Sequence record: NC_048792.1
DNA length: 64,000 nt
Strand: one strand, 5' to 3'
Shown here: positions 49,172 through 62,415 of the stretch, piece after piece
Layout: the number at the start of each line of letters is the position of its first letter
How positions within the stretch are numbered: the first letter of the stretch is position 1
Notes under the pieces: generated by a model
The model's input: the letters and a program-made list of their open reading frames with translations, nothing else
Told to the model about the DNA's origin: nothing
The model's database searches: none
Position numbers and translations under genes: made by a program

Positions 49172-51388
49172 ATGGCTAACTCAAGCTTAGGCAATCGTAT
49201 TTCGGAACTCCCACGTTCTACGAGATCGATCAACGATGCCGACTTAACCCCGATTTCTCAAATCAAAACCAACAATCCGGAAACCGTAGCGGCAACCGTC
49301 GGTGACATTCGTGCCACCTTGGATTTTGATAATGCTTATAATTCCATCCCAGAAGGCCTGGCAGGGACTTTCCCTGAAGAGCGCTTCTATGTTTACACCG
49401 ATAACTCAAAACGCTTTGTAAACGGCTACATCAACAAAAACGGCGTATCTGAAGTTATCCTCGACAAATCAGGTCAACCTCGTCGCTGGGCTACCCCGCT
49501 CTATATGCTCGCTATCGGTGAGCAATCTATCACAGTAGCTTCTGTTGACCAGATGCGTATCATGGCTCCGCAAGTTGACGGCCAAGTCGTACGTATGCGT
49601 AACTTCCGCCAGGGTAACGTTCAGTACAAAAACGGTGGCGATTGGGTTTACGACGCTAACGACAAAACCACCAAAGACGACGGCGTGATGTGTGTTGTTA
49701 CCAACACCGGCGAACGTTTCAAGCGTGACATCTCTAGCGGCTCTATCGAAACCGATTGGTTCTTCGACCCGGTAATGGATATCGCAGACTATAGTCTGAC
49801 GCTGAACAAAGCCGCTGAGTGGGTGGAAGTAAAAGGTACTGAGTGGTGGCAGACCTGGTTACCAAGCACCCCAGCTTACATTACCATGGTAGGTCCTGGC
49901 GGTGTTCGTACCTGTAAGAAACCAGTATGGCTCCGTATGTGGGCCGTGAGCTGGGACTTCCGTGGTACTTTGCTGGACTTCACTGGAGGTGCTGTCGGTC
50001 AGACCAACGTCTCCGTAGTCTACGGTCACCGTAACTCTACACTGAGCAATCTGCGCATGTTATCCAGCGTAGCGTTGAAGCAGAAGGGTATCAACGTCTC
50101 AACGACTTCCGGTAACATTCACGGTCTGTCCGCAGCGTTCCTGAACTTCAACAACATCTCAATCAACCGTCACGACATTGCTTGGGATCTGGGCGATAAC
50201 TGCTACCTGAACAACTGGTTCCAGTGCACCACCCAAGGTTGTCGTCTGCCAATCAACGCGCCTAAGTCCGCAAACGCCGGTGAAACTCTGGTATGGACTA
50301 AGTGTATCTTCGGTGACGGTATTGGTCCTTACCTGAACACAGGTATGTCGATGACCTTCCACGGTTGTTCCTTTGACTACTCCGGTTACAAAACCGAAGC
50401 TGATCAATTGGCTAACGCCGAGAAAGAAGGTTTGTTCAATATCGATAACTGTACTGTCATCATGTATGGTTGCGGTAACGAATACGGTAACTTGAACAGT
50501 CGCTGGACTGGGCCGGTGTGGAGAGGTTCTGGTATTATCAAGCTTTACGAGTGCCAGTGGATTCTGACTCAATCGAGCACTGTTGAGCCAAAAGAAACTA
50601 CCCCGCACTTGGTCCACAACTACTACTTCGAAGATACCTCTGCCGACTTGTCGTCTAAGGTCTATCTGGAAGGGTTCTACGTCCCTAACCCGGACCTGAA
50701 CCGTTTCTCTGGTAGTTGGACTAATGGCTGCTTCATCAAAGTCACTGAGTCTTACCCAGGCCGTTATAAGGACATGTGGCGTAACTACACGTTGGGTAAG
50801 GGGGCTAACATGTTAATCTCCCCTAATCCTAACAACGTTGGTTATTTGACTATCAACCGTTCTCGTTGCGTTGGCGGCACTGTAATTTCTCCTACTGAGA
50901 CTTCACTGTTCAAAGTGTCTACTAACGGCAACAAGTTAGTAATCACCAGTTCGGATACTACCAAAGCACCTAAAACCTTAAGTTTCTACACTCATGGTAA
51001 AGCGGGTAACTGGTACGGCTCTCGATTAACGGTTACTGGTAATCGGGCAATGCCAGATGTACGTGTCGGTACGAACTGCTTCGGCGTAGTAGGTTACGTA
51101 GCTCAGGATAACAGCATCACTTCGTTGGGCGAGCAACGCCAGACCTGGACTAACTCGCTGCAGGGTATTACAACCACAGCACAATCTACTCCGGGTATGC
51201 GCATGACTCAGTTAGGCACTACTGAATATCTGCCGCTTTGTCCTCCAGGTACCGAATGGGTTCGTGTCTCTATTGAGATGACTAACTTTGGCATCTCAGC
51301 AGGAGAAGAACCTGCGGTATTGGAAATCACCGACTTCTACGCTTGTGAAGTAGGTATCTGTCGCGACACCAACCACCGCGTTTGGTAA
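49172..51388 (+). CDS. Tailspike/depolymerase 1
   Basis: 738 aa. Shared anchor (RISELP..DNAYNSIPEGLAGT..FYVY), KDDG module, and a beta-helix-like Asn/Cys ladder body. Confidence 0.8.
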   Translation: MANSSLGNRISELPRSTRSINDADLTPISQIKTNNPETVAATVGDIRATLDFDNAYNSIPEGLAGTFPEERFYVYTDNSKRFVNGYINKNGVSEVILDKSGQPRRWATPLYMLAIGEQSITVASVDQMRIMAPQVDGQVVRMRNFRQGNVQYKNGGDWVYDANDKTTKDDGVMCVVTNTGERFKRDISSGSIETDWFFDPVMDIADYSLTLNKAAEWVEVKGTEWWQTWLPSTPAYITMVGPGGVRTCKKPVWLRMWAVSWDFRGTLLDFTGGAVGQTNVSVVYGHRNSTLSNLRMLSSVALKQKGINVSTTSGNIHGLSAAFLNFNNISINRHDIAWDLGDNCYLNNWFQCTTQGCRLPINAPKSANAGETLVWTKCIFGDGIGPYLNTGMSMTFHGCSFDYSGYKTEADQLANAEKEGLFNIDNCTVIMYGCGNEYGNLNSRWTGPVWRGSGIIKLYECQWILTQSSTVEPKETTPHLVHNYYFEDTSADLSSKVYLEGFYVPNPDLNRFSGSWTNGCFIKVTESYPGRYKDMWRNYTLGKGANMLISPNPNNVGYLTINRSRCVGGTVISPTETSLFKVSTNGNKLVITSSDTTKAPKTLSFYTHGKAGNWYGSRLTVTGNRAMPDVRVGTNCFGVVGYVAQDNSITSLGEQRQTWTNSLQGITTTAQSTPGMRMTQLGTTEYLPLCPPGTEWVRVSIEMTNFGISAGEEPAVLEITDFYACEVGICRDTNHRVW

Positions 51389-51394
51389 AACAGA

Positions 51395-51435
51395 GGAGAG
51401 GGCTTCGGCCCTCTCCTTATATCGTTTCCTATGAA
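51395..51435 (+). promoter_or_regulatory. Hairpin plus TTCCTATGAA putative late promoter
   Basis: GGAGAGGGC-TTCG-GCCCTCTCC at 51395-51416; TTCCTATGAA at 51426-51435. Confidence 0.6.
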
Positions 51436-51464
51436 ATCTAAACAGACTTTGTAAGGTAAATAAA

Positions 51465-53885
51465 ATGGTTGATCAGGTTAAAATATCTGAGCTAGGTAAG
51501 GCTACCGTTGTACGGGAAAGTGATGCTATCCCGCTGAATAATACAACCACGCGAGGTTTGCCGATTACCAGACAGGCTGATATTACCAATATTCGTTCTG
51601 CAATATTGTTCAATGACGCATTCAACAGTATCGAAGAAGGATTAGATATTACTAATAACGGCGACTCTTTCTACGTCTATAACGATGCAGATAAGTTAAC
51701 AGTTGCTCGGTATTTGAAAATAAACGACGTCGCCAGTCCTGTTGTTGGTGAAGACGGGAAACAGATTATAGAGGGCACGGGTATCGCACTTAAGACTATA
51801 GGTGACCTAGGCGGCCCGTTTGGTTTCGGAGTTGTTGGACGAGTAGACTCCTACGATTCATTGCGTAATTTAGTACCTACTAAAGAGGGTCAGGTAGTTT
51901 ACCTCAACGGATTTCATTCCGGTAGCCATTTAGGCGGGGGTGCATTTATATCCTCGCTAACCTACTCAGTCGATGACGGTGGTACGGTCGCATCTGTCAG
52001 TAATGGTAATTACTCATGGAAACGTCTGTTAGGTAATGAAATAAACTTAGAGATGTTCGGCGCAGTCGGTGATGGCGTAAATGTAGATAATGACTCGATA
52101 GACAATGCTTTGGCGTTTTGTAAGCTCAACGGAAAAAGTGATAATAACATCATTGTTAAGTTGACTAGAAACTACAGGGTAAATAAGTCTTTTGAGTTGA
52201 CAAGCTTTACATCCATCATCGGTCCAGGGGAAATCTTTATTGACTCCCAAGACCTTACTCTGATATTATTCACCGGATCAGACTTAGAGTCACTTCTTAT
52301 TCAAGGGTTGATTATCAGCAGGGCTGTCGATAAACCGGCTACTATGTGGAGTAAGGGCGCAACTGCTATCCAGTTGACTCGGGTAAAAGACTTGACTATT
52401 CGGGACAACGATATCTCGTTACAAACCGACGCTATCTCGGTAAGTAACTCCGACCGAGTCCTGATTGAAAACAACAAAACGCACGAATTAGGCGAAGAAG
52501 GTATTGCCATCCGTAGCAGCCGTAACTTTATTGTCAGAGGTAACCACGTCTTCCACCATCACGGAGATGGGATTTTAATGAAGACGGGTAACATCGAGTG
52601 CCACGATGGTCAGATAGTAGATAACTTCGTTTATGATGGTCTGATCGATCCAGTTGCCGCTGTCGGTCAACGCGGCGGTGGTATAACTCTTAATGACGAA
52701 AATATTAACGGTGCCGGCGGATCTAGTACCACGATGGACGGATTAGTCGTTTCTCGTAATACCTGTCGTAATTTGAGCTATGGTATAGCGTTCAATAACT
52801 TAACCAGCGCGGTTATCCAAGGTAACATCATTACTGGCGTCACGCGATTCGGTTTAGTTATTGATACCACGCCATTCAATAACCCTGCACTTAACCCAGT
52901 ATTACGTTTCTCAGTAAGTGGCAACATCCTAAAGGATATTGGCGAGGTTGGTATCGGGTTCCGTTCAAACCGTGGCATTACGGTAGATTATGTTAGTGTA
53001 ACAGGTAACGTAATTGAGAATGCCGGCTACAAGACTAATGGCGATTTCCCATCGTTAGACATCGGTACCGGTACTGTAACTGGGAATACAGTAGTCAATG
53101 GTAGAGTAGCTATCATGGCCTCCGGGAACGCGTTAATTAACGCTAACCAATTTATCGGATCTCCGTTTACTTCCCCAGGCGCTAACTCGGTATGGATAAA
53201 ATTATCTGAATCGGTGACCTTCAGTAACAACTTAGTGAAGGATACCAATATGGGTCATATTCGGATGTCAGCAACTAAGAATATGATCTTCACTAACAAC
53301 AACATCGATACAGCGAGTACGTACGGTGTTCTGGCGTTCGTCACTTCCGGGCTACCTTACGGTCATTCCATGTTCCGAGATAATATTTATATTACCAAGG
53401 CCCCTTCGGTATGTAACTTTACCATCGGTGCTGACTCTATCAGGTCCTTAGGGTTGAGTAGGGCTGAGTTTGGTAACAACGACTACATGTACGACTCGAC
53501 TTTATCTTCCCTGGTTAACTACAAAAAGGGCGATCGCATTTCCTTAGTTGCCCCAGAGGGAGGAGCGAGTACTTACGTAGTTATCGATGAAACTGGTAAA
53601 AAGGCCGCTGTTGAGTTCACTCCGTATTACGTCAAGTCTAATACGTTTACTCAATCGGTACCGGCCAACGGGACTGCGGTGATCGTGGCACAAGATTCAA
53701 AAGTTAAAGGTACCTGGGCCGTCGGTAAAGTTTGGTGTTCGGTCAATCGTAATGGTGTAATGATTCAGTGCGATTGCACCAAGGATGGGGAAGTAACGAT
53801 TCGATTTGTTAACACGACTGCTGCTACAGTGACGTTGACTAACGCAGTTGTTACACTAGAATGTTTTGAGATGCCTAACATTTAA
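51465..53885 (+). CDS. Tailspike/depolymerase 2 (right-handed beta-helix)
   Basis: 806 aa. KISEL anchor, GGGAF..DDGG..WKR module, MFGAVGDG beta-helix start, many GN-x-repeat rungs, and a C-terminal beta-sandwich. Confidence 0.88.
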   Translation: MVDQVKISELGKATVVRESDAIPLNNTTTRGLPITRQADITNIRSAILFNDAFNSIEEGLDITNNGDSFYVYNDADKLTVARYLKINDVASPVVGEDGKQIIEGTGIALKTIGDLGGPFGFGVVGRVDSYDSLRNLVPTKEGQVVYLNGFHSGSHLGGGAFISSLTYSVDDGGTVASVSNGNYSWKRLLGNEINLEMFGAVGDGVNVDNDSIDNALAFCKLNGKSDNNIIVKLTRNYRVNKSFELTSFTSIIGPGEIFIDSQDLTLILFTGSDLESLLIQGLIISRAVDKPATMWSKGATAIQLTRVKDLTIRDNDISLQTDAISVSNSDRVLIENNKTHELGEEGIAIRSSRNFIVRGNHVFHHHGDGILMKTGNIECHDGQIVDNFVYDGLIDPVAAVGQRGGGITLNDENINGAGGSSTTMDGLVVSRNTCRNLSYGIAFNNLTSAVIQGNIITGVTRFGLVIDTTPFNNPALNPVLRFSVSGNILKDIGEVGIGFRSNRGITVDYVSVTGNVIENAGYKTNGDFPSLDIGTGTVTGNTVVNGRVAIMASGNALINANQFIGSPFTSPGANSVWIKLSESVTFSNNLVKDTNMGHIRMSATKNMIFTNNNIDTASTYGVLAFVTSGLPYGHSMFRDNIYITKAPSVCNFTIGADSIRSLGLSRAEFGNNDYMYDSTLSSLVNYKKGDRISLVAPEGGASTYVVIDETGKKAAVEFTPYYVKSNTFTQSVPANGTAVIVAQDSKVKGTWAVGKVWCSVNRNGVMIQCDCTKDGEVTIRFVNTTAATVTLTNAVVTLECFEMPNI

Positions 53886-53888
53886 CGA

Positions 53889-53923
53889 TCATACGGCCAG
53901 GGGTTTCCCTGGCCTATGTTTGT
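53889..53923 (+). repeat. 35-bp direct repeat, copy 1 (contains hairpin)
   Basis: TCATACGGCCAGGGGTTTCCCTGGCCTATGTTTGT, identical to 56096-56130. Confidence 0.95.
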
Positions 53924-53962
53924 CGTTCCTATGAAATAACTCAATTGGAAAAGGGCCATGAC

Positions 53963-56095
53963 ATGCCAGTCTCCCCAATGAAATTTACTAAGATCTCCGA
54001 CTTACCTAAAAAGGAAGTTATGGAGAACGATCAGTTTATCATCAATACCAACGACACTAAGTTGGATCAAACTAGCGTAGCTTCTCTCTACGATATTCGT
54101 GAGGGTGTCTACTTCAGTAACGCAGCTAACACTATCGCCGAAGGTTTAGCTTCCGTAGACGATAACGAGATGTTCTTTGTTTACGACACCGCGGCTAAGT
54201 TCTCCGTTCTTCAGTACATGAGAGTTCGTAACCAGGCATCGCCCGTCATTGGTTCCGATGGCAAACAACGCCGCTTCCCTACTTATCTTTCCATGCTGAA
54301 CGTAACTGCTATCTCTGAGACGTCCGGTTACGATATCATTGGTAAGGTTGACAATTTCTCCGCGCTGCGTTCTATCAAACCTACCTACACAGGCCAACGT
54401 GTTATCCTGGCTGGGTATTTCTCTGGTAGCTCTTTGGGATCCGGGGAATTTGTGGGGTACGCAGGGACAGCTAACGATGATGGCGGTACTACTGCCTCAG
54501 GTGATGGCTTTTATTGGAAGCGGAACAAGACTGCCTTTACGCTCGAAGATTTCGGTGGCGGTCAAGTAGACGATACTGAAGCAATGCGTGCATCTCAGAA
54601 AGCACAAGTAGGCCCTATTACCCTCTCCCCAGGTAAAACCTATTATTACTCATCCCCGGTAAAACATTATTCTAAAGCCGGCTGGATTGGTAACGGTGCT
54701 TCTATCGTATTCAGAGGGACAGGTAACCGAATTCCGTTTATCTCTTCTCCGACTACAGCCGCTGGCGTTGATAACGACCGCGCAAACGGAAGTACTGCCG
54801 TAACTGGAGCTATCTTTAAAGACCTGACTATTGACGTCAACTATGTCGATACTACGGGTGCATTAGGCTTTGAGTTTGGCGAGAACACGTTAGACAACTG
54901 GACGAATTGCGTCTTTACTAACGTGACATTCAAGAACGGTAAGTTCGATAACTTGGGGCTGCAGAATAACTCCACCGATAACCAGTTTATCCGCTGTACT
55001 TTCATTAACGCAGGTGAAGACTCGGTTACTGTACGCGGCGGTTGTCTCCGTAATGAGTTTGTTGAATGTGATGTTGTCAATAGCGCCCAGGTAGCTCACC
55101 GAGACGGAACCTTCTACGGAGACGGTATCGTCAACAAAGGTCGTGATACCTTGATCAAAAGCTGTCGCTTCATCAATATCGGTAATGGTAAGAAAGGCGC
55201 GGGTATTGCGAATAACGCTGAAGATACCAAGAACGCTGACGAAGCTAGTAACGGTACTTACCTCAACAACTATTTCATTAACTGTTATGGCGGTTTTGGT
55301 TTCGGTACGGTTAACCCAGACTTCATCGCAGCAGGTGATTTGATTAAAGGTATCAAGGCTATCGGAAACGTATTTGTAAATACGCTTCGCACCGTGATAG
55401 GTATTCGTGATCTTTACCAACCGGTTCTGTTGGATAACGTTATCCTTACCCAGACCACCGGTAACGTAACCACGATTGAGATTACCAACTGCACCAACTT
55501 CCAAATGACCGGTCGTGTTACAGATGCCGCTGGCTCCGCTATTACGATTACGTCTTCCTCGGGTAAAGTTGATTTGGTGGCGGATAATGTCTCCACGACC
55601 AAGACACTCAACGGGGTGGTTATTACCGACAGTAATCGGATTACGGGCAGTATCCGTTTGATCAATGCTCAACGCCGCGGCTGTACTTTCTCTAACTGTA
55701 ACAACATGGACTTAGACCTCTACGTTGAGTCGCCTGCACAGGACGCGCTGGAAGCAGTTGGCTGTCGTTACTCTAACTTAGATGTTAAGTTGGTGAACGT
55801 CCCTGAACACGGTATGACATTGAACGGCGTTGTTGAAAGTAATATCAAGTTCAACATCAATGATGCAGGAGTTAAAACTCCATCTGCATTTTATCCGATC
55901 CGGTTACTGGGTGTACGTAACAGTATCCTCAGCGGGGTATCGTCTTCGGCTAATGCGAATAAACCACTTTACGATATTACATCCGATGCTAATAACGTAA
56001 ACGTATTAATCGCCAATAGTCGTCTTGGAGCGGGTACTACGGGTAAAGTACAGGTTGGTCAAGGGTCTACTATTACCCAGAACAATATCATCTAG
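53963..56095 (+). CDS. Tailspike/depolymerase 3 (beta-helix)
   Basis: ORF 53945-56095; ATG at 53963 has RBS AAGGG. KISDLP anchor, GSGEF..DDGG..YWKR, EDFGG, beta-helix repeats. Confidence 0.88.
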   Translation: MPVSPMKFTKISDLPKKEVMENDQFIINTNDTKLDQTSVASLYDIREGVYFSNAANTIAEGLASVDDNEMFFVYDTAAKFSVLQYMRVRNQASPVIGSDGKQRRFPTYLSMLNVTAISETSGYDIIGKVDNFSALRSIKPTYTGQRVILAGYFSGSSLGSGEFVGYAGTANDDGGTTASGDGFYWKRNKTAFTLEDFGGGQVDDTEAMRASQKAQVGPITLSPGKTYYYSSPVKHYSKAGWIGNGASIVFRGTGNRIPFISSPTTAAGVDNDRANGSTAVTGAIFKDLTIDVNYVDTTGALGFEFGENTLDNWTNCVFTNVTFKNGKFDNLGLQNNSTDNQFIRCTFINAGEDSVTVRGGCLRNEFVECDVVNSAQVAHRDGTFYGDGIVNKGRDTLIKSCRFINIGNGKKGAGIANNAEDTKNADEASNGTYLNNYFINCYGGFGFGTVNPDFIAAGDLIKGIKAIGNVFVNTLRTVIGIRDLYQPVLLDNVILTQTTGNVTTIEITNCTNFQMTGRVTDAAGSAITITSSSGKVDLVADNVSTTKTLNGVVITDSNRITGSIRLINAQRRGCTFSNCNNMDLDLYVESPAQDALEAVGCRYSNLDVKLVNVPEHGMTLNGVVESNIKFNINDAGVKTPSAFYPIRLLGVRNSILSGVSSSANANKPLYDITSDANNVNVLIANSRLGAGTTGKVQVGQGSTITQNNII

Positions 56096-56130
56096 TCATA
56101 CGGCCAGGGGTTTCCCTGGCCTATGTTTGT
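56096..56130 (+). repeat. 35-bp direct repeat, copy 2
   Basis: Identical to 53889-53923; begins immediately after the TSP3 stop codon. Confidence 0.95.
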
Positions 56131-56170
56131 TCATATGACAGTTTCCTAAAACAATCAGGATAAGTATACA

Positions 56171-58246
56171 ATGGCCGATAAATCACCAGTTAAAATATCT
56201 CAGTTACCCGAGCCTACCGGGACTGGGATTAACGATAGCGACATCTTCGCGGCATCCCGTATAACGGGAGCAGATAAGTTAGAGACTCAACGTATCACTG
56301 TCAGCGAATTGCGTAAGCTGATGGATTACGGTAATGCATTCTCTGACTTGAACGCAGCTATTGCAGCAACCGTTAAAGATCAACAGTTTTACGTATTCGT
56401 TGATGACTCGAAAGAGTTCGTTTACCGTTACGTGAACATGGGCGGAATTGCTTCCCCAGTTTTAAGTGCCGATGGTACACCTGTTAAAGAACCAACTAAA
56501 AACTTACTGCGTAATCTTGGCGATATTAAAAGTCAAGATGGTTTCGGTTTAGTTGGGGCAGTGACCTCTTTCGATGCCCTGCGTAAGTTAACACCTCGTG
56601 CTGCCGGCTGGCGAGTCTATCTTGCAGGTTATTACGAAGGGACTACTTTAGGTTCCGGATTCTTCGTTTCTAAATCTGGTGTAGCTACTGATGACCAAGG
56701 TGTCATTGCCGTTGTTAACGGTAGCTATTATTGGGAACGTGTACTGGAAACTAACGAAAGTATCCCAATGGATTATTACGGTATCCGTCCTGGTGATGAT
56801 ATTTCCGATAAACTCAACTTTGCAGTTATTGCAGCTAAAGTTCGGAATATCGTAGATATCTCTTTGCCAGGGACACCTTTCGACAAACCATTCATCCTTT
56901 CTAAAAAAGTAGATATCGATCTCACCGATGGAAAGGTCATCTTTATTAAAGGTGCATGTAACAAGATCGGTACAATCATTCAACATAGGTTCGATGGAAC
57001 CGCATTCTATTTCCACCGCAACCATGTGTCCAGTAAGAACTTCTGGAACACTGGCGGTATTGAGAATGTTACAATCACCTGCCATACTGACTATCAACAG
57101 ACAGCAACTGCGGCTGCAATCCAGATTTCAGATACCTGGGGCTTTATTGTAAACCGTGTTCGTATCCTTAACTTCAAAGCCGGCAACGGTATCGTCGTTA
57201 AGAATGAGACAGCATGGACTGAAGGGACTAAGATCACCGACGTCGATATTCGAGCCACTCAAAACGGCGTGCTGTTTACCAGGGATGTAACCAACGATAA
57301 GAACACCAACTCGTTCTTCGGTACTTACTTCAATCAATATAGTTTCCAGGCCGGTACTGGTAAGGCTGGGACTTCAGCTATTCGCGTAGGTGACGCAGCT
57401 ACCGATGCCGCTAACAAAACTTGTGTCCTCTACGGTTCTGAAATTCAGTTCCGCTATTGGGCAGAAGGTGGCGGCGCTAACTTCGGACTGATGGTTTCTA
57501 GTAGTGGCCAGGTTACATCAGGCAACACGCTAATTATCCCAGATGGCGTTGGGCTAAGTGCTAATGATACTATCACCGCTACTCCGCTTAAATGTATCGC
57601 AGTACGTGGTAATGGGACCTACCTGAACAACACGACAATCGAACCTTACCAGGGGAGAATGAACTGCTTCAAGGTTAAGGATATTAACTTTGCACTGGAA
57701 GCTCTGCTCAGTTTTGAGAAAGGCGTCGGCGTCAACAGTACCTTGTTCAAAGGCCGTCCAGTTATCGATCCTAAAGGCCTGCGGTTCTATACCTACCAAG
57801 AGTTCACCGGGGATGAAATCAAAGATGGATTCTCAGTTGGGATGACTAACCTTCCGGTAGGTACTCGTCTACGTGTTGTGTTACGCTACTCTACTACCGA
57901 CAATGATGATAACAGCCGTATATCTTCGTACATCGTTTCTGTTGGTGGTGCTGGTATGTTCACTACAGTAGCTCCGGAGAATATCGCTATTCTTAATAAT
58001 GTCACAACGACTAAGTCAGCAGTTAGTGGGACGGATGTTGTTACTGATGTAGGGATTAACGATGGGCGTTCACGCCTTAACGATTGGGTGGATACTGCGA
58101 CAAGTCCACGCGTCGTTAACGGTAACGCAACGCAGACTAACAAAGACGGCTACGGAACCAACGCACGTAACTTCCGCATCGTTGTACCAGCTAACCCGGC
58201 TGCTACAGCTACCCTGAAACTGGGTGTTGAAGTGGAATTCATTTAA
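56171..58246 (+). CDS. Tailspike/depolymerase 4
   Basis: 691 aa. KISQLP anchor, GSGFF..DDQG..YWER, DYYGIRPGD, beta-helix-like body. Confidence 0.85.
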   Translation: MADKSPVKISQLPEPTGTGINDSDIFAASRITGADKLETQRITVSELRKLMDYGNAFSDLNAAIAATVKDQQFYVFVDDSKEFVYRYVNMGGIASPVLSADGTPVKEPTKNLLRNLGDIKSQDGFGLVGAVTSFDALRKLTPRAAGWRVYLAGYYEGTTLGSGFFVSKSGVATDDQGVIAVVNGSYYWERVLETNESIPMDYYGIRPGDDISDKLNFAVIAAKVRNIVDISLPGTPFDKPFILSKKVDIDLTDGKVIFIKGACNKIGTIIQHRFDGTAFYFHRNHVSSKNFWNTGGIENVTITCHTDYQQTATAAAIQISDTWGFIVNRVRILNFKAGNGIVVKNETAWTEGTKITDVDIRATQNGVLFTRDVTNDKNTNSFFGTYFNQYSFQAGTGKAGTSAIRVGDAATDAANKTCVLYGSEIQFRYWAEGGGANFGLMVSSSGQVTSGNTLIIPDGVGLSANDTITATPLKCIAVRGNGTYLNNTTIEPYQGRMNCFKVKDINFALEALLSFEKGVGVNSTLFKGRPVIDPKGLRFYTYQEFTGDEIKDGFSVGMTNLPVGTRLRVVLRYSTTDNDDNSRISSYIVSVGGAGMFTTVAPENIAILNNVTTTKSAVSGTDVVTDVGINDGRSRLNDWVDTATSPRVVNGNATQTNKDGYGTNARNFRIVVPANPAATATLKLGVEVEFI

Positions 58247-58254
58247 TAAAACCA

Positions 58255-58296
58255 GAGGAGGGGAAACCCTCCTCTTTTATTTTGGGTTCCTATGAA
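58255..58296 (+). promoter_or_regulatory. Terminator hairpin plus TTCCTATGAA putative late promoter
   Basis: GAGGAGGG-GAAA-CCCTCCTC then TTTTATTTT; TTCCTATGAA at 58287-58296. Confidence 0.6.
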
Positions 58297-58326
58297 TATT
58301 TACACAATATCATGAGGCTTACGTCC

Positions 58327-61300
58327 ATGTCAGATAACGATTTACAATTGCGCATTACCGAGTTGCCGAAGTTAGACCACTTCGACTCCAACTCTGTTCT
58401 CCCTGCGGTAGGGCGTAGTCAAGGCGCTAAAATGACAGGTAAAGTTAACTTCCGTGAAATGCGGAGTTACTTCGATTTGTCAAACGCCTACGAAACTATT
58501 AAGGACGGTGTCGATGCCACTAAGCTAGGTGATACGTTCTTCGTCTACTCTGATGGCACCAAAGTATTCGCCAACGAATACCAGAACATCGGTGGTGCCG
58601 CTACCCCAATCCAAGATCCCAAAGAAGGGGTCATCTATTACCCAACGCGTATGGGTATTGTAGGTAGTCTGGCTGCCGGTGCTACCGTAGGTAGCTTTGA
58701 TGAACTCCGTAACACTCGCCCGTTAAAAGAGGGCGTTAGCATTTATCTCAGTAGCTATTATAAAGGCCTTAATAAAGGTGGCGGTGAGTTTATTGGTTAT
58801 TACGGTAAACGTGCCGACGATGGCGGCATGGTAGCCGGTGACGGGAATAACTACTACTGGGTACGTAACGCTAACTTCGTCACTCCGGAAATGTTTGGTG
58901 CTTACGGTGCCCCTGAAAAAGATGACTCCGCTGCTATAGAAGGGGCACTGAACTCAGGATTAGATGTCCAGTTCGACGGTAGCGCTACTTATATCGTCAA
59001 CCGTACTCTTGTCCTGAAGTCAATCAAGTGGCAACAGTTCATCGACGGTAACGGAGCTTGGATCAAGTATTCCGATAAATCCCGTGGGTTTATTAACGAG
59101 ATTGACGCCAATGGTGTTACTCAGCGTTACACGAAGTTCCGTAGCTTCTTCAACTTAAATCTCCAGGGCCCTGCTACCAAGAACTCTAAGTGGAACGACG
59201 TTAACCAGTGCGATGCTCTCTGCATTAGCTACGGTGTAGTTGAAAACTGTAACTTCTACGGCTGGTCTAACGCCCTGCGTGGTTTCGGTGAAGCCTACGT
59301 AAACAACTGCTTTGGCGACGACCTTCGTACAGCAATGTTCTCTTGCTACGATCCAGGGTATAACGAAATCATTAACAGCTCGGTTGGTTGGTGTTCTGGT
59401 GACGCGATCATCCTTAAAGGCGGTTCAGGTAAAGCTCACAACGTCGATATCGTCTACGCAGGATGTATTGACAAAAACAACGAAGACGGCGCTACGGCTC
59501 TCCCAGGTTGTATCGTGTCATGTGGCGCAGATGGAGCCGGATCTCAAAACATCCAGATCTCCAACATCAGCTGCCAATACTTCGGTTGTGCCGGTCTGAA
59601 CATCCAAGGTGACGGCGTAACGGTTTCAGGTGACATGAACCTAGGCTCTATCTACGAAGATAACTTCCAGTATGCTAACCAAGCGGCTGCTTTGTGGATC
59701 GGCGCTAAGAACTTCACCATCGGTAACTTGCACTTTAACAAAGTACACGTTGGTGTAGGGATCAACGGTAACTGCGCGAATGGTTCGATTGGTAAGATTC
59801 GGATCATGAGCAAAACCAACCTGGCAGGATCTACTCTGTTCTCGGCAACAGATGGCCCTAACTCCCAGATCACCAAAGTTATCGTGGACGCAATTGACTT
59901 CCTCGGCGCCTCTACGATTAACAACGACGTTTACATCAACACCGATGGTCTGTATCTGAAATCGTTCTATATCCAATCCTTGAACAACCTTCAAGGCGGT
60001 TATACGGTTTCTCTGCGTAAGAACGCCCGTATTGGTAAAATGATTCTGGCGGCTACGACTTCAGCAAGTACAAGTCCGGTAATGCTCATCGAGAGCGATT
60101 CTGTCATCGATGAACTGGAGTTCCGTCGTAACTTCGGTACCGCATTGGTAGTTGAGAATAATGCTCGCCCGGCGATCAAGCGTCTTTCCTTCCAGTACAA
60201 ACAAGGTATTGCTGCACCGTTCATTATTAAAGGTGACGGTACCATGACCTTGAACTGGGGTGACGTCGATATGTTCGGTCCGAGTGTGGCTCGTCCTCAG
60301 ATCGCTGGTAAGCTCGTAATGAACTCTTACCAAGGCCCTACGTTCCGTCCGTTTGATGCAGCCGTATATGCAGGCGTTTCTGTACCTAATCGCGTGTTCC
60401 AGGGTATAGAAGAAATGCGTATGGTAGGTCCGTCCAAAGAAGGTGACACCGCTTACCTTTCTGGTTATTACCTTAACAGTACCAGTACATTAGGTAGCGG
60501 TACTTTCATCGGACACATTGGCGCTGCTCCTGTGGCAGACGACAAAGGTTGTTTGATCGTAGGTAACGGTTACTGGTGGGAACGTATCGTGGCTGGCCCT
60601 CTGGATGTATTCATGTTCGGGGCTAAAGGCGACTTTAACGTAACCACCCAATCTGGTACGGATGACTCGGATTCATTCATCAGCACTATTGCCGCTGCCA
60701 TTCGTTTAAACTACCGTGACGTATTGGTCCCTGCCGGTTACAACTACTACCTGACTAAAACCATCAACCCAGGTGGTGTAGGTTATCGCGGTAATAAAGG
60801 CGTTGCTATCCGCGGCGGGTCTACCGCCAACACGAATATCTTCTTCAACCCAGCTACCAATGGAACTGCATGTTTTGAGATTCTCGGTGGTTCAGGTATT
60901 CACTCAGGACGCGAAGTTTCTGGTTTTACGATTCAGCCCGTTAACAGTAAACTTTACACTGGTGTTGGTATTCGTTACGCCGGCTGTTGCTTCGTAAGGC
61001 CTGCTAACTTCAATATCATCATGAAGTTCGATATAGCACTTCACTTACTGAACGACCAAGGCCCAGGGGTATTTACCGAATACAACAACTTCTTTAACTG
61101 GCGTCTGCACCGTTCACACGTTGATGTCCTGTTCGAAGTTAACGGTGGCGATAACTCGTTCCACGGTAACAGCTTCTACGAAAGTCAGATTCAGGTTAAA
61201 ACGAATCAGAACTTGGGTGACGGTAACACCGACGTAGGTATCGGTATTGAGTTAAGGGGCGTAACCGCACCAGCATACTGGTACGATGCTAAGGTATTTG

Positions 61301-62370
61301 TTGATATCTTCGGCGGCCCAGGTGCTATCGGGATGAAACTTACCCGTGCTAACACTGACCACTTGATCGGAGGTATCAATGGCGAAGGTGATTTGATCTT
61401 CCAGAGCACCGATACCTCTGCTTTCGAGTTGGCGGGTGATCTGCGCAGTATTGGTAAGGTAACCTGGGATGTGGCCGCCGAACCAACCACGGGTCGAGCT
61501 GCTGTCTACATCTTCAATAACCGAATCAGTAACGAATCCAACTTCACCTCCCCACGGATGAATGGACTTAGTCCGAGACTTTTGAATCCTTCTCTGGCCG
61601 ATAGAACGGACAACGGGTCAGTTCCTGCTATATTCCGTGCAACTAAGTTAGACTATGACAGTATCTGTAACGCGGTGATTGGGTTGGCAAATAACCGCCA
61701 CCTTTGGGGTTATATTCCACCTAACGGTAACCTGCAGAGTTTCGTACCTGGCGCAGCGCTATCGTTCGATGGCACCTCGTTTACTAGCTACAGTGATTCG
61801 TTTATTATCGGGACCCAGAACAGAACCTTCTCCATTAATGGCACTGCTCTGTTCCCGTCTACTACAGGTAGCTTAACCCTTGGTCAGTCTCAATATCGCT
61901 GGAGTAGTATCTACCTCAATAACTTCGACATTGATTCAAATGGGATTAACCCGGTAGTAACTAATGCGATGTCAATTGGTAGTACGAGTAAGATCTTCAA
62001 GGATATCTATCTCCAAAATGCTCCAACTGTTGTTTCCGATGAAAAGGATAAGGATGAAGTTTCCGAAATCCCTCCTGAGGTTATTGCTGCATGGGGTAAA
62101 ATAAACTTCTCTCAATGGAAAATGAAAACGGCCATTGACGAGAAGGGAGAGAAAGCCAGATTGCACGTTGGTGTAATCGCGCAAGATATACAGAAGGCTT
62201 TCCAGGAAGCTAATTTGGATGCCACGGATTACGGTATCTTAATTATCGAGAAAGACGAAGACGAGAACGAACAATGGATGGTTCGCATGGATGAGTGCCT
62301 TGTACTAGAGGCCGCTTACCAGCGTAGTCGTTTGGATGAGATTGAGAAATTACTTAAAGGTAAGAAATAG
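58327..62370 (+). CDS. Tailspike 5: two tandem depolymerase modules plus a C-terminal S74-type intramolecular chaperone
   Basis: ATG at 58327 (RBS GAGG). The DDG..W-R..FGA module occurs twice. C-terminus VSDEKDK..ARLHVGVIAQD..YGIL..VRMDECL followed by a coiled coil. Confidence 0.85.
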   Translation: MSDNDLQLRITELPKLDHFDSNSVLPAVGRSQGAKMTGKVNFREMRSYFDLSNAYETIKDGVDATKLGDTFFVYSDGTKVFANEYQNIGGAATPIQDPKEGVIYYPTRMGIVGSLAAGATVGSFDELRNTRPLKEGVSIYLSSYYKGLNKGGGEFIGYYGKRADDGGMVAGDGNNYYWVRNANFVTPEMFGAYGAPEKDDSAAIEGALNSGLDVQFDGSATYIVNRTLVLKSIKWQQFIDGNGAWIKYSDKSRGFINEIDANGVTQRYTKFRSFFNLNLQGPATKNSKWNDVNQCDALCISYGVVENCNFYGWSNALRGFGEAYVNNCFGDDLRTAMFSCYDPGYNEIINSSVGWCSGDAIILKGGSGKAHNVDIVYAGCIDKNNEDGATALPGCIVSCGADGAGSQNIQISNISCQYFGCAGLNIQGDGVTVSGDMNLGSIYEDNFQYANQAAALWIGAKNFTIGNLHFNKVHVGVGINGNCANGSIGKIRIMSKTNLAGSTLFSATDGPNSQITKVIVDAIDFLGASTINNDVYINTDGLYLKSFYIQSLNNLQGGYTVSLRKNARIGKMILAATTSASTSPVMLIESDSVIDELEFRRNFGTALVVENNARPAIKRLSFQYKQGIAAPFIIKGDGTMTLNWGDVDMFGPSVARPQIAGKLVMNSYQGPTFRPFDAAVYAGVSVPNRVFQGIEEMRMVGPSKEGDTAYLSGYYLNSTSTLGSGTFIGHIGAAPVADDKGCLIVGNGYWWERIVAGPLDVFMFGAKGDFNVTTQSGTDDSDSFISTIAAAIRLNYRDVLVPAGYNYYLTKTINPGGVGYRGNKGVAIRGGSTANTNIFFNPATNGTACFEILGGSGIHSGREVSGFTIQPVNSKLYTGVGIRYAGCCFVRPANFNIIMKFDIALHLLNDQGPGVFTEYNNFFNWRLHRSHVDVLFEVNGGDNSFHGNSFYESQIQVKTNQNLGDGNTDVGIGIELRGVTAPAYWYDAKVFVDIFGGPGAIGMKLTRANTDHLIGGINGEGDLIFQSTDTSAFELAGDLRSIGKVTWDVAAEPTTGRAAVYIFNNRISNESNFTSPRMNGLSPRLLNPSLADRTDNGSVPAIFRATKLDYDSICNAVIGLANNRHLWGYIPPNGNLQSFVPGAALSFDGTSFTSYSDSFIIGTQNRTFSINGTALFPSTTGSLTLGQSQYRWSSIYLNNFDIDSNGINPVVTNAMSIGSTSKIFKDIYLQNAPTVVSDEKDKDEVSEIPPEVIAAWGKINFSQWKMKTAIDEKGEKARLHVGVIAQDIQKAFQEANLDATDYGILIIEKDEDENEQWMVRMDECLVLEAAYQRSRLDEIEKLLKGKK

Positions 62371-62377
62371 ACATAGC

Positions 62378-62415
62378 GCGGAGGGGAAACCCTCCGCCTA
62401 TTTTGTTCCTATGAA
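62378..62415 (+). promoter_or_regulatory. Hairpin plus TTCCTATGAA putative late promoter
   Basis: GCGGAGGG-GAAA-CCCTCCGC; TTCCTATGAA at 62406-62415. Confidence 0.6.

Follow-up and report, generated by a model that had tools for sequence, protein, structure and literature searches.

The DNA analyzed here, hereafter the window, is a stretch of 64,000 nucleotides (nt) from sequence record NC_048792.1, and the subject of the analysis is the gene lying at positions 58327-62370 of its plus strand. This segment is 100% identical over 4044 nt to gp221 of Serratia phage Moabite (MK994515 / NC_048792), a jumbo phage of 274 kb in the genus Moabitevirus, and its product (YP_009849289), annotated in the record as 'tail protein', is in our reading a tailspike of 1347 amino acids (aa) in which two receptor-binding modules follow one another. 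The list of open reading frames (ORFs) and the translation give a single frame that runs without an internal stop from the ATG at 58327 to the stop codon at 62368-62370, with a GAGG ribosome-binding site (RBS) located 10 nt 5' of the ATG (58314-58317, plus strand) by sequence scan and annotated in the record as well. Terminator-like hairpins flank the gene on both sides. The first (58254-58275, plus strand) belongs to the upstream spike gene gp222 and delimits the gp221 transcription/translation unit at its 5' end, and the second (62378-62397, plus strand) lies 3' of gp221; both were detected by terminator scan and are found in the record. Scanning for promoters and terminators revealed no plus-strand terminator within gp221, the junction between the two modules included, and the signals at that junction do not rise above chance. 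The original prediction, drawn from the sequence alone, had described a protein about twice as long as its neighbours and free of internal stops and internal RBS gaps, and this description stands: the neighbouring spikes measure 691-806 aa, the frame is intact, and no convincing internal RBS is present.

Domain layout of gp221

The N-terminal anchor (aa 1-117, 58327-58677 on the plus strand, to which the domains described below also belong) aligns with the N-termini of eight paralogous spikes (alignment with gp218-gp225; BLASTP identity of 25-36% to the paralogs), divergence beginning only past the domain that comes next. It is modelled with low confidence (predicted local distance difference test, pLDDT, below 50), and the Pfam scans of gp221 returned no T4gp10-like docking domain, no dedicated structural comparison of this low-confidence region having been made.

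The domain that follows the anchor is the key to the architecture of the protein. The original prediction had reported a 'DDGG module' that occurs at about 58690-58900 and recurs as a whole at about 60390-60630. A neck profile built from five copies encoded in the window places the two gp221 copies at aa 119-192 (58681-58902) and aa 689-766 (60391-60624), only a few bases away from the predicted positions; the second copy is modelled by AlphaFold2 (AF2) as a small beta domain. The module is the small beta domain situated between anchor and barrel, named neck in WceF (residues 166-229; PMC7949094) and connection domain in Depo32 (PMC10581125), and not a catalytic motif. Comparison of gp221 with itself recovers the repeat (aa 125-194 against aa 695-768, 44% identity, BLASTP E 2e-7) and detects no significant similarity between the two halves outside the neck. 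Both copies match identical positions of PHROG 4250 'EPS depolymerase' (E 2e-15 and 6e-12) and both match the WceF entry of the Protein Data Bank (PDB), 6TGF, at residues ~170-250 (E 2e-10 and 0.009). The module corresponds to family PF27114 (Phage_tail_beta), which is precomputed on gp221 orthologs and on all the spikes of a related metagenomic contig; our own Pfam scans of the whole protein and of its split halves, run with a profile set that lacks PF27114, gave Peptidase_S74 as their sole match. All of the paralogs gp218-gp225 show an anchor and then a neck at the same positions, and the internal copy of gp221 aligns only with the necks of these paralogs, in agreement with the reported absence of a second anchor. 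The arrangement that characterizes the neck family, a beta domain of ~70 aa placed directly before the capping helix of a beta-helix, is found twice in gp221.

Neck 1 leads into receptor-binding module 1 (aa 193-688, 58903-60390), for which AF2, Foldseek and stand-alone homologues indicate a right-handed parallel beta-helix with a native C-terminal end. Neck 2 leads into receptor-binding module 2 (aa 767-1167, 60625-61827), a predicted beta-helix with a C-terminal beta domain of the Kp7 gp51 / KP32 gp37 type (7Y5S, Foldseek, tblastn and AF2). The structural evidence comes from two overlapping AF2 monomer models. In that of aa 1-780 (mean pLDDT 72), neck 1 reaches ~85 and barrel 1 lies mostly at 80-95, while values fall below 50 at the linker formed by aa 674-686 and range over 60-74 in neck 2. 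In that of aa 660-1347 (mean pLDDT 80), barrel 2 lies mostly above 90, the stalk preceding the chaperone is low and the chaperone is helical. Foldseek searches of the PDB match both halves to many solved tailspikes with a probability of 1.00, the second half yielding Kp7 gp51 (7Y5S; E 7e-21, TMt 0.75) and then Depo32, CBA120 TSP2, WceF and DpK2, and the first half Depo32, CBA120 TSP2, DpK2 and WceF (E 4e-9 to 1e-7); a search of BFVD returned the 2050HW ortholog and other phage spikes. According to these models, both halves of gp221 are tailspike-type right-handed beta-helices that differ from each other, as had been anticipated from the sequence. The homologues 7Y5S, 6TGF and 7VZ3 are all trimers, from which we infer the same state for gp221.

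Beyond barrel 2, a fibre-like stalk (aa 1168-1236, 61828-62034) combines a pLDDT below 50 with alignment to the C-termini of tailspikes 6EU4 and 9VVR; low confidence in a monomer model would be expected for an intertwined trimeric segment. The protein ends in a C-terminal intramolecular chaperone (aa 1237-1347, 62035-62367; Pfam PF13884, with matches to 3GW6 and 3GUD). Its assignment to the S74 type, which had also been proposed from the sequence, is borne out by a Peptidase_S74 match at aa 1237-1296 that lies well above the Pfam gathering cutoff (E 4e-12, 46.7 bits against 22). A residue check locates a Ser1237-Asp1238 pair at the start of this domain, which we take, from what is known of the family, to be the self-cleavage site of the chaperone.

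Stand-alone relatives and exchange of the distal module

Each half of gp221 has relatives of its own. Those of barrel 1 align from about aa 180 of gp221 and stop at aa 694-696, that is, at the start of neck 2, which module 1 abuts without a spacer. They comprise proteins of Serratia phages Tsm2 (673 aa) and phiMAM1 (987 aa), Klebsiella phage HS106 (635 aa) and Stenotrophomonas phage BUCTxx100 (614 aa), together with a chromosomal protein of Serratia quinivorans (519 aa). Because these stand-alone proteins end where they do, the junction within gp221 is the natural C-terminus of a complete spike. The second half has ~40 stand-alone relatives of 619-917 aa and 29-59% identity, which sit behind four N-termini (P22 Head_binding, TSP1/Gp66 Tail_spike_N, T7 tail-fibre and PF27114-type). 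Its best matches in phage records, by tblastn, are to Serratia phage 3M (41%), KKP 3708 (36%), KP32 gp37 (36%) and Kp7 (28%), and its closest relative is P0005, a stand-alone spike of 784 aa with its own anchor and neck (59% identity, 98% coverage). P0005 is encoded directly upstream of a two-neck long spike, P0048, on a metagenomic contig of 99.8 kb syntenic with the Moabite cluster, and in BUCTxx100 relatives of both halves are encoded as separate genes of one cluster. The two halves consequently do occur as separate genes in other phages, as the original prediction had supposed they might.

Comparison of gp221 with its orthologs points to the same junction. The Moabite ORF is also present in Haymo, 2050HW and vB_ParM-25 at 98.3-100% nucleotide identity, the 4044-nt version with two necks occurring in Moabite (two records), Haymo, 2050HW (two records) and vB_ParM-25, and a 3855-nt ortholog with two necks in BUCT660, Yaphecito and Kodama. 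With three metagenomic proteins (P0047, P0048 and P0051), the two-neck layout is found in nine phage records and three metagenomic proteins. Long orthologs of type B (Moabite, Haymo, 2050HW and ParM-25) have 1347 aa and end in S74; those of type A (BUCT660, Yaphecito, Kodama, P0047 and P0048) have 1273-1285 aa, lack S74 and are 42-66% identical among themselves over their full length. P0051 (1342 aa) retains the two necks at just 33-36% identity. Since the layout is kept down to 33% identity, the fusion is old.

Nucleotide identity between Moabite and type A is ~95% up to nt ~2050 of the gene and ~50% or less from nt ~2100 to the stop codon, and it returns to 98-100% within 50 nt past the stop, which defines the 3' boundary of the exchange. 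The 5' boundary (60376-60426, gene nt ~2050-2100), where identity to the type-A orthologs drops from ~95% to ~50%, coincides with the start of neck 2. On these alignments the distal module exists in two unrelated versions, A and B, and the exchanged segment runs from neck 2 to the stop codon. The position of the 5' boundary and the existence of each module on its own elsewhere support the proposal that the protein arose through stacking, with the DDGG module as the joint. Cassette type cuts across species, since BUCT660 and 2050HW (types A and B) are assigned to one species and Yaphecito and Moabite (again A and B) to the other. Moreover, Moabite and 2050HW differ at 67 nt in the first half and at 1 of the 1992 nt of the second, which shows that cassette B was transferred recently between lineages. 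A mutual exchange between gp222 and the distal half of type A was considered as well and rejected, BLASTP similarity between them being present only at neck level.

Proteins with two necks seem to be rare. A search with the neck profile against 1.84 billion representative proteins yielded 900 matches at E <= 0.001, and inspection of the best 150 of the 900, ranked by total score and hence in a way that favours proteins with two copies, gave two full necks only in the long-spike orthologs P0045, P0046, P0048 and P0051 and in the unrelated P0194; P0047, identified separately, also carries two necks. In two other long proteins, P0104 and P0112, a type-A-like barrel comes straight after the single neck. 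The 1036-aa P0194, from the Logan metagenome, has necks at aa 37-111 and 493-566 and the Acinetobacter phage tail fibre 5W5P as its only PDB sequence match; it may represent an independent case of stacked modules.

Several further observations concern the surroundings of the long spike. It is one of about nine spike genes that stand in a row, gp225-gp216 (window 49172-62370; L004:18120-26831), and whose products share the anchor type and the neck and then diverge; gp225 is annotated as 'neck protein', yet has the same N-terminus as the other spikes. In the 2050HW record, the orthologs of gp224 and gp219 (L014:2396-4661 and L014:15328-17518) are each annotated as two coding sequences. The slot after the long spike is occupied in BUCT660 by a spike of 1001 aa (L001:9928-12933) instead of the 731-aa gp220 of Moabite (L004:18120-20315). 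The first 221 aa of the BUCT660 protein are as in gp220 and are followed by a barrel 24-36% identical to the type-A distal module, so that this spike appears to be a second case of module exchange in the cluster. Regarding vB_ParM-25 (ON375847.1, 24547-28590), the recorded host is Pectobacterium aroidearum, which differs at family level from that of the Serratia phages; its spike gene has 98.3% nucleotide identity and its second half is 100% identical to theirs as protein. Finally, the hairpins at 58254-58275 and 62378-62397 have a stem-loop core in common, GGAGGGGAAACCCTCC, and repeated terminators among spike genes could act as recombination homology at cassette borders.

Relatives of the barrels are also encoded outside phages. 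The S. quinivorans protein mentioned above (L008:10001-11560, CAMIRA010000002.1) is encoded in a non-phage context; it shares 38-42% identity with the long-spike barrel 1 (gp221 aa 184-689) and has the same end point as the phage module. The S. marcescens chromosome encodes P0018 (L007:10001-13144, WMCE01000002.1), a protein of 1047 aa with a tandem of two beta-helices. The first (aa 28-462) shows 33% identity to the gp224 barrel of Moabite (compare window 51465-53885), and the second (aa 520-1028) shows 42% identity to the gp221 barrel 2 (compare window 60613-62133). P0018 lacks an anchor, a neck and an S74 domain, its neighbouring genes are not of phage type, and its 90%-identity cluster holds 469 sequences, which come from S. 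marcescens, S. ureilytica and S. nevei. P0018 looks like a host-side, WceF-like relative made of two spike barrels.

One chain with two barrels and its alternatives

We put at roughly 70% the probability that gp221 is a single-chain, most likely homotrimeric tailspike with two complete receptor-binding/depolymerase modules in series. The components of this reading differ in strength. The architecture and the cassette exchange, as described above, are held with high confidence; that both barrels are active, and on different glycans, is a tentative proposal which we rate at slightly short of even odds. Synonymous differences greatly outnumber nonsynonymous ones in the first half (56:8 codons between Moabite and 2050HW, 78:11 between Moabite and BUCT660) and in the type-A second half (61:10 between BUCT660 and Yaphecito), so that both halves appear to be under purifying selection. 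In barrel 1, D359, D402 and D534 are among the acidic residues conserved in at least eight of nine homologues; in barrel 2, E918, E1020 and D1092 are invariant in 38 homologues, and several further columns are acidic in at least 35 of the 38. Constraint and acidic residues fit two working enzymes, without proving them. Together with the homology of module 2 to capsule-depolymerase spikes, they support indirectly, as a plausible reading, the dual glycan specificity that the original prediction had proposed for gp221 (two capsule types, or a capsule and then lipopolysaccharide, LPS, or colanic acid); colanic acid or LPS as a substrate would be a guess.

Some considerations weigh against two active enzymes in one spike. 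The type-B second half is nearly devoid of divergence within the genus, and selection on it is judged only from distant homologues; a barrel of purely structural function would show purifying selection too; and the conserved acidic residues of both barrels are only suggestive as putative catalytic residues. In addition, the structural models are of monomers and cover the two halves separately, and the anchor and stalk are of low confidence.

The most serious alternative, which we regard as unlikely, is that only one barrel is enzymatic and that the other, most likely barrel 1, is a rigid spacer or a binding-only shaft that extends the distal depolymerase outward in a crowded, multi-spike tail apparatus. 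The signature of purifying selection is equally compatible with such a structural role, and gp221 sits among about nine paralogs with one anchor type, where reach could count. On the other hand, D359, D402 and D534 recur as conserved residues in the stand-alone spikes that Serratia, Klebsiella and Stenotrophomonas phages encode, as well as in the chromosomal Serratia homologue, and in the stand-alone relatives barrel 1 is the sole receptor-binding part.

Less probable again is the possibility that both barrels address the same polysaccharide, either by cutting two linkages or with one barrel binding and the other cleaving, which would combine a single host specificity with higher processivity. 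Nothing links the barrels to separate substrates, and two activities on one glycan are known from single spikes, as in the epsilon15 tailspike, in which an esterase and an endorhamnosidase are joined (bioRxiv 10.64898/2026.07.31.742079). Against this, each barrel has separate stand-alone relatives, and the distal barrel has been exchanged for an unrelated one in spikes whose proximal barrels are still ~95% identical, a pattern which suggests that the barrels evolve as independent specificity units.

It is more doubtful still that the gene gives two products, an internal start near Met698/Met700 or proteolysis at aa 674-686 releasing module 2 as a possibly soluble depolymerase and leaving the virion with a spike of ordinary length. 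Two Met codons do stand at the start of neck 2, and AF2 confidence falls at aa 674-686. The internal start-site check, however, found nothing resembling a Shine-Dalgarno motif at a suitable spacing from Met698/Met700, the true start having its GAGG, and neither a terminator nor a promoter signal is seen near the junction. A freed module 2 would moreover carry a neck without an anchor, and the retention of the in-frame fusion down to 33% identity would be unexpected if co-expression alone sufficed. An assembly or annotation chimera of two adjacent spike genes, which is suggested by nothing beyond the twofold length and the recurring motif and which the original prediction had named as its possible undoing, retains practically no probability and is excluded as an assembly artefact because independent genomes (nine phage records, three metagenomic proteins) share the two-neck ORF.

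If gp221 is a two-module spike of the kind preferred here, the following mechanism can be proposed. The protein would form a long coaxial trimer that begins at the virion with the anchor and continues outward with neck 1 and its barrel 1, neck 2 and its barrel 2, and finally the stalk and the S74 chaperone. The chaperone would start the folding of the trimer from the C-terminus and, by analogy with its family, would then remove itself at Ser1237-Asp1238. The distal barrel would be the first to meet the outermost glycan, and the proximal barrel might act on a second, inner glycan or on another host type. Each unit of neck and helix would behave as a mobile cassette, within which the neck might play two roles: that of a trimer-forming adaptor, able to restart a barrel at the tip of a preceding one, and that of a conserved patch of homology providing the 5' recombination boundary of the distal cassette, the 3' boundary being supplied by the conserved region just past the stop codon, around the terminator. 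The broadest version of this scheme joins three elements, namely one trimeric spike with two active barrels reading two Serratia glycans, a neck serving as universal 'restart' adaptor for extending and re-tipping spikes by recombination, and host chromosomes harbouring tandem-barrel relatives of the same principle; we advance it with a little more reserve than the dual activity itself.

Comparison with known systems

All the parts of gp221 are of known kinds. Searches of the open-access literature, based on exact words and therefore liable to miss a report, found no earlier description of two complete neck-and-barrel modules in one tailspike chain with replacement of the distal one. The case offers a defined junction, the neck, and natural instances of distal module exchange. 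Should both barrels work, one gene would no longer equal one specificity and counts of spike repertoires made from genomes would change; the neck would gain a role beyond that of connecting anchor to barrel; and a natural structural template would be available for joining two trimeric beta-helices.

The closest counterpart of the first half lies in the Klebsiella K2 depolymerases Depo32 (7VZ3/7VYV) and DpK2 (7LZJ), its top structural matches, which present the same order of anchor, neck and beta-helix; unlike gp221, they lack a second neck, a second barrel and an S74 domain, and a carbohydrate-binding module comes after their only barrel. For the second half, the Kp7 type I tail fibre gp51 (7Y5S) is a relative of gp221 aa ~760-1300 in both sequence and fold (phmmer E 2e-44 over aa 75-622 of the half), and the KP32 gp37 capsule depolymerase is 36% identical over 86% of the half. 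These two proteins and the second half of gp221 have the same beta-helix, stalk and S74 end, but in the former a lone module follows an anchor of T7 or other type, whereas in gp221 the module stands behind a second neck atop another complete beta-helix. The C-terminus itself matches the endosialidase-type chaperone (Peptidase_S74; 3GW6, 3GUD), with Ser-Asp at the expected cleavage position; in gp221 the chaperone would serve a two-barrel chain, and the type-A orthologs of the same spike do without it.

A similar comparison can be drawn with Pantoea stewartii WceF (6TGF) and the AmsF-type glycanases. The neck of WceF matches both necks of gp221 and its fold matches both barrels, but WceF belongs to a bacterium and not to a virion, and in this enzyme a P22-like head domain is combined with a single neck and a single barrel. 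Serratia chromosomes carry homologues of the phage barrels, one of them with barrels in tandem, and these homologues bear on the exchange of parts between phage spikes and glycanases of the WceF/AmsF type.

In phages that target capsules or LPS, host range is usually widened by means of extra spike proteins. The branched systems of CBA120 (TSP1-4) and of phiKp24 and the Alcyoneusvirus phages bring several glycan specificities together in one virion, and Moabite likewise has its cluster of about nine spikes, with an anchor that resembles the N-termini of phiKp24-type spikes (33-35% identity). In CBA120 and phiKp24, however, specificities are added as separate docked proteins, whereas in gp221 the addition would be covalent, within one polypeptide. 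The tailspike of Salmonella phage epsilon15 does unite two enzymatic sites in one spike, to which the two barrels of gp221, of predicted activity, would be the counterpart, but it does so with an esterase 'petal' domain beside one beta-helix and not with two stacked beta-helix modules, each with its neck. To the known routes to several specificities, that is, separate proteins (KP32, CBA120, phiKp24) or a side domain (epsilon15), gp221 would add the covalent stacking of receptor modules.

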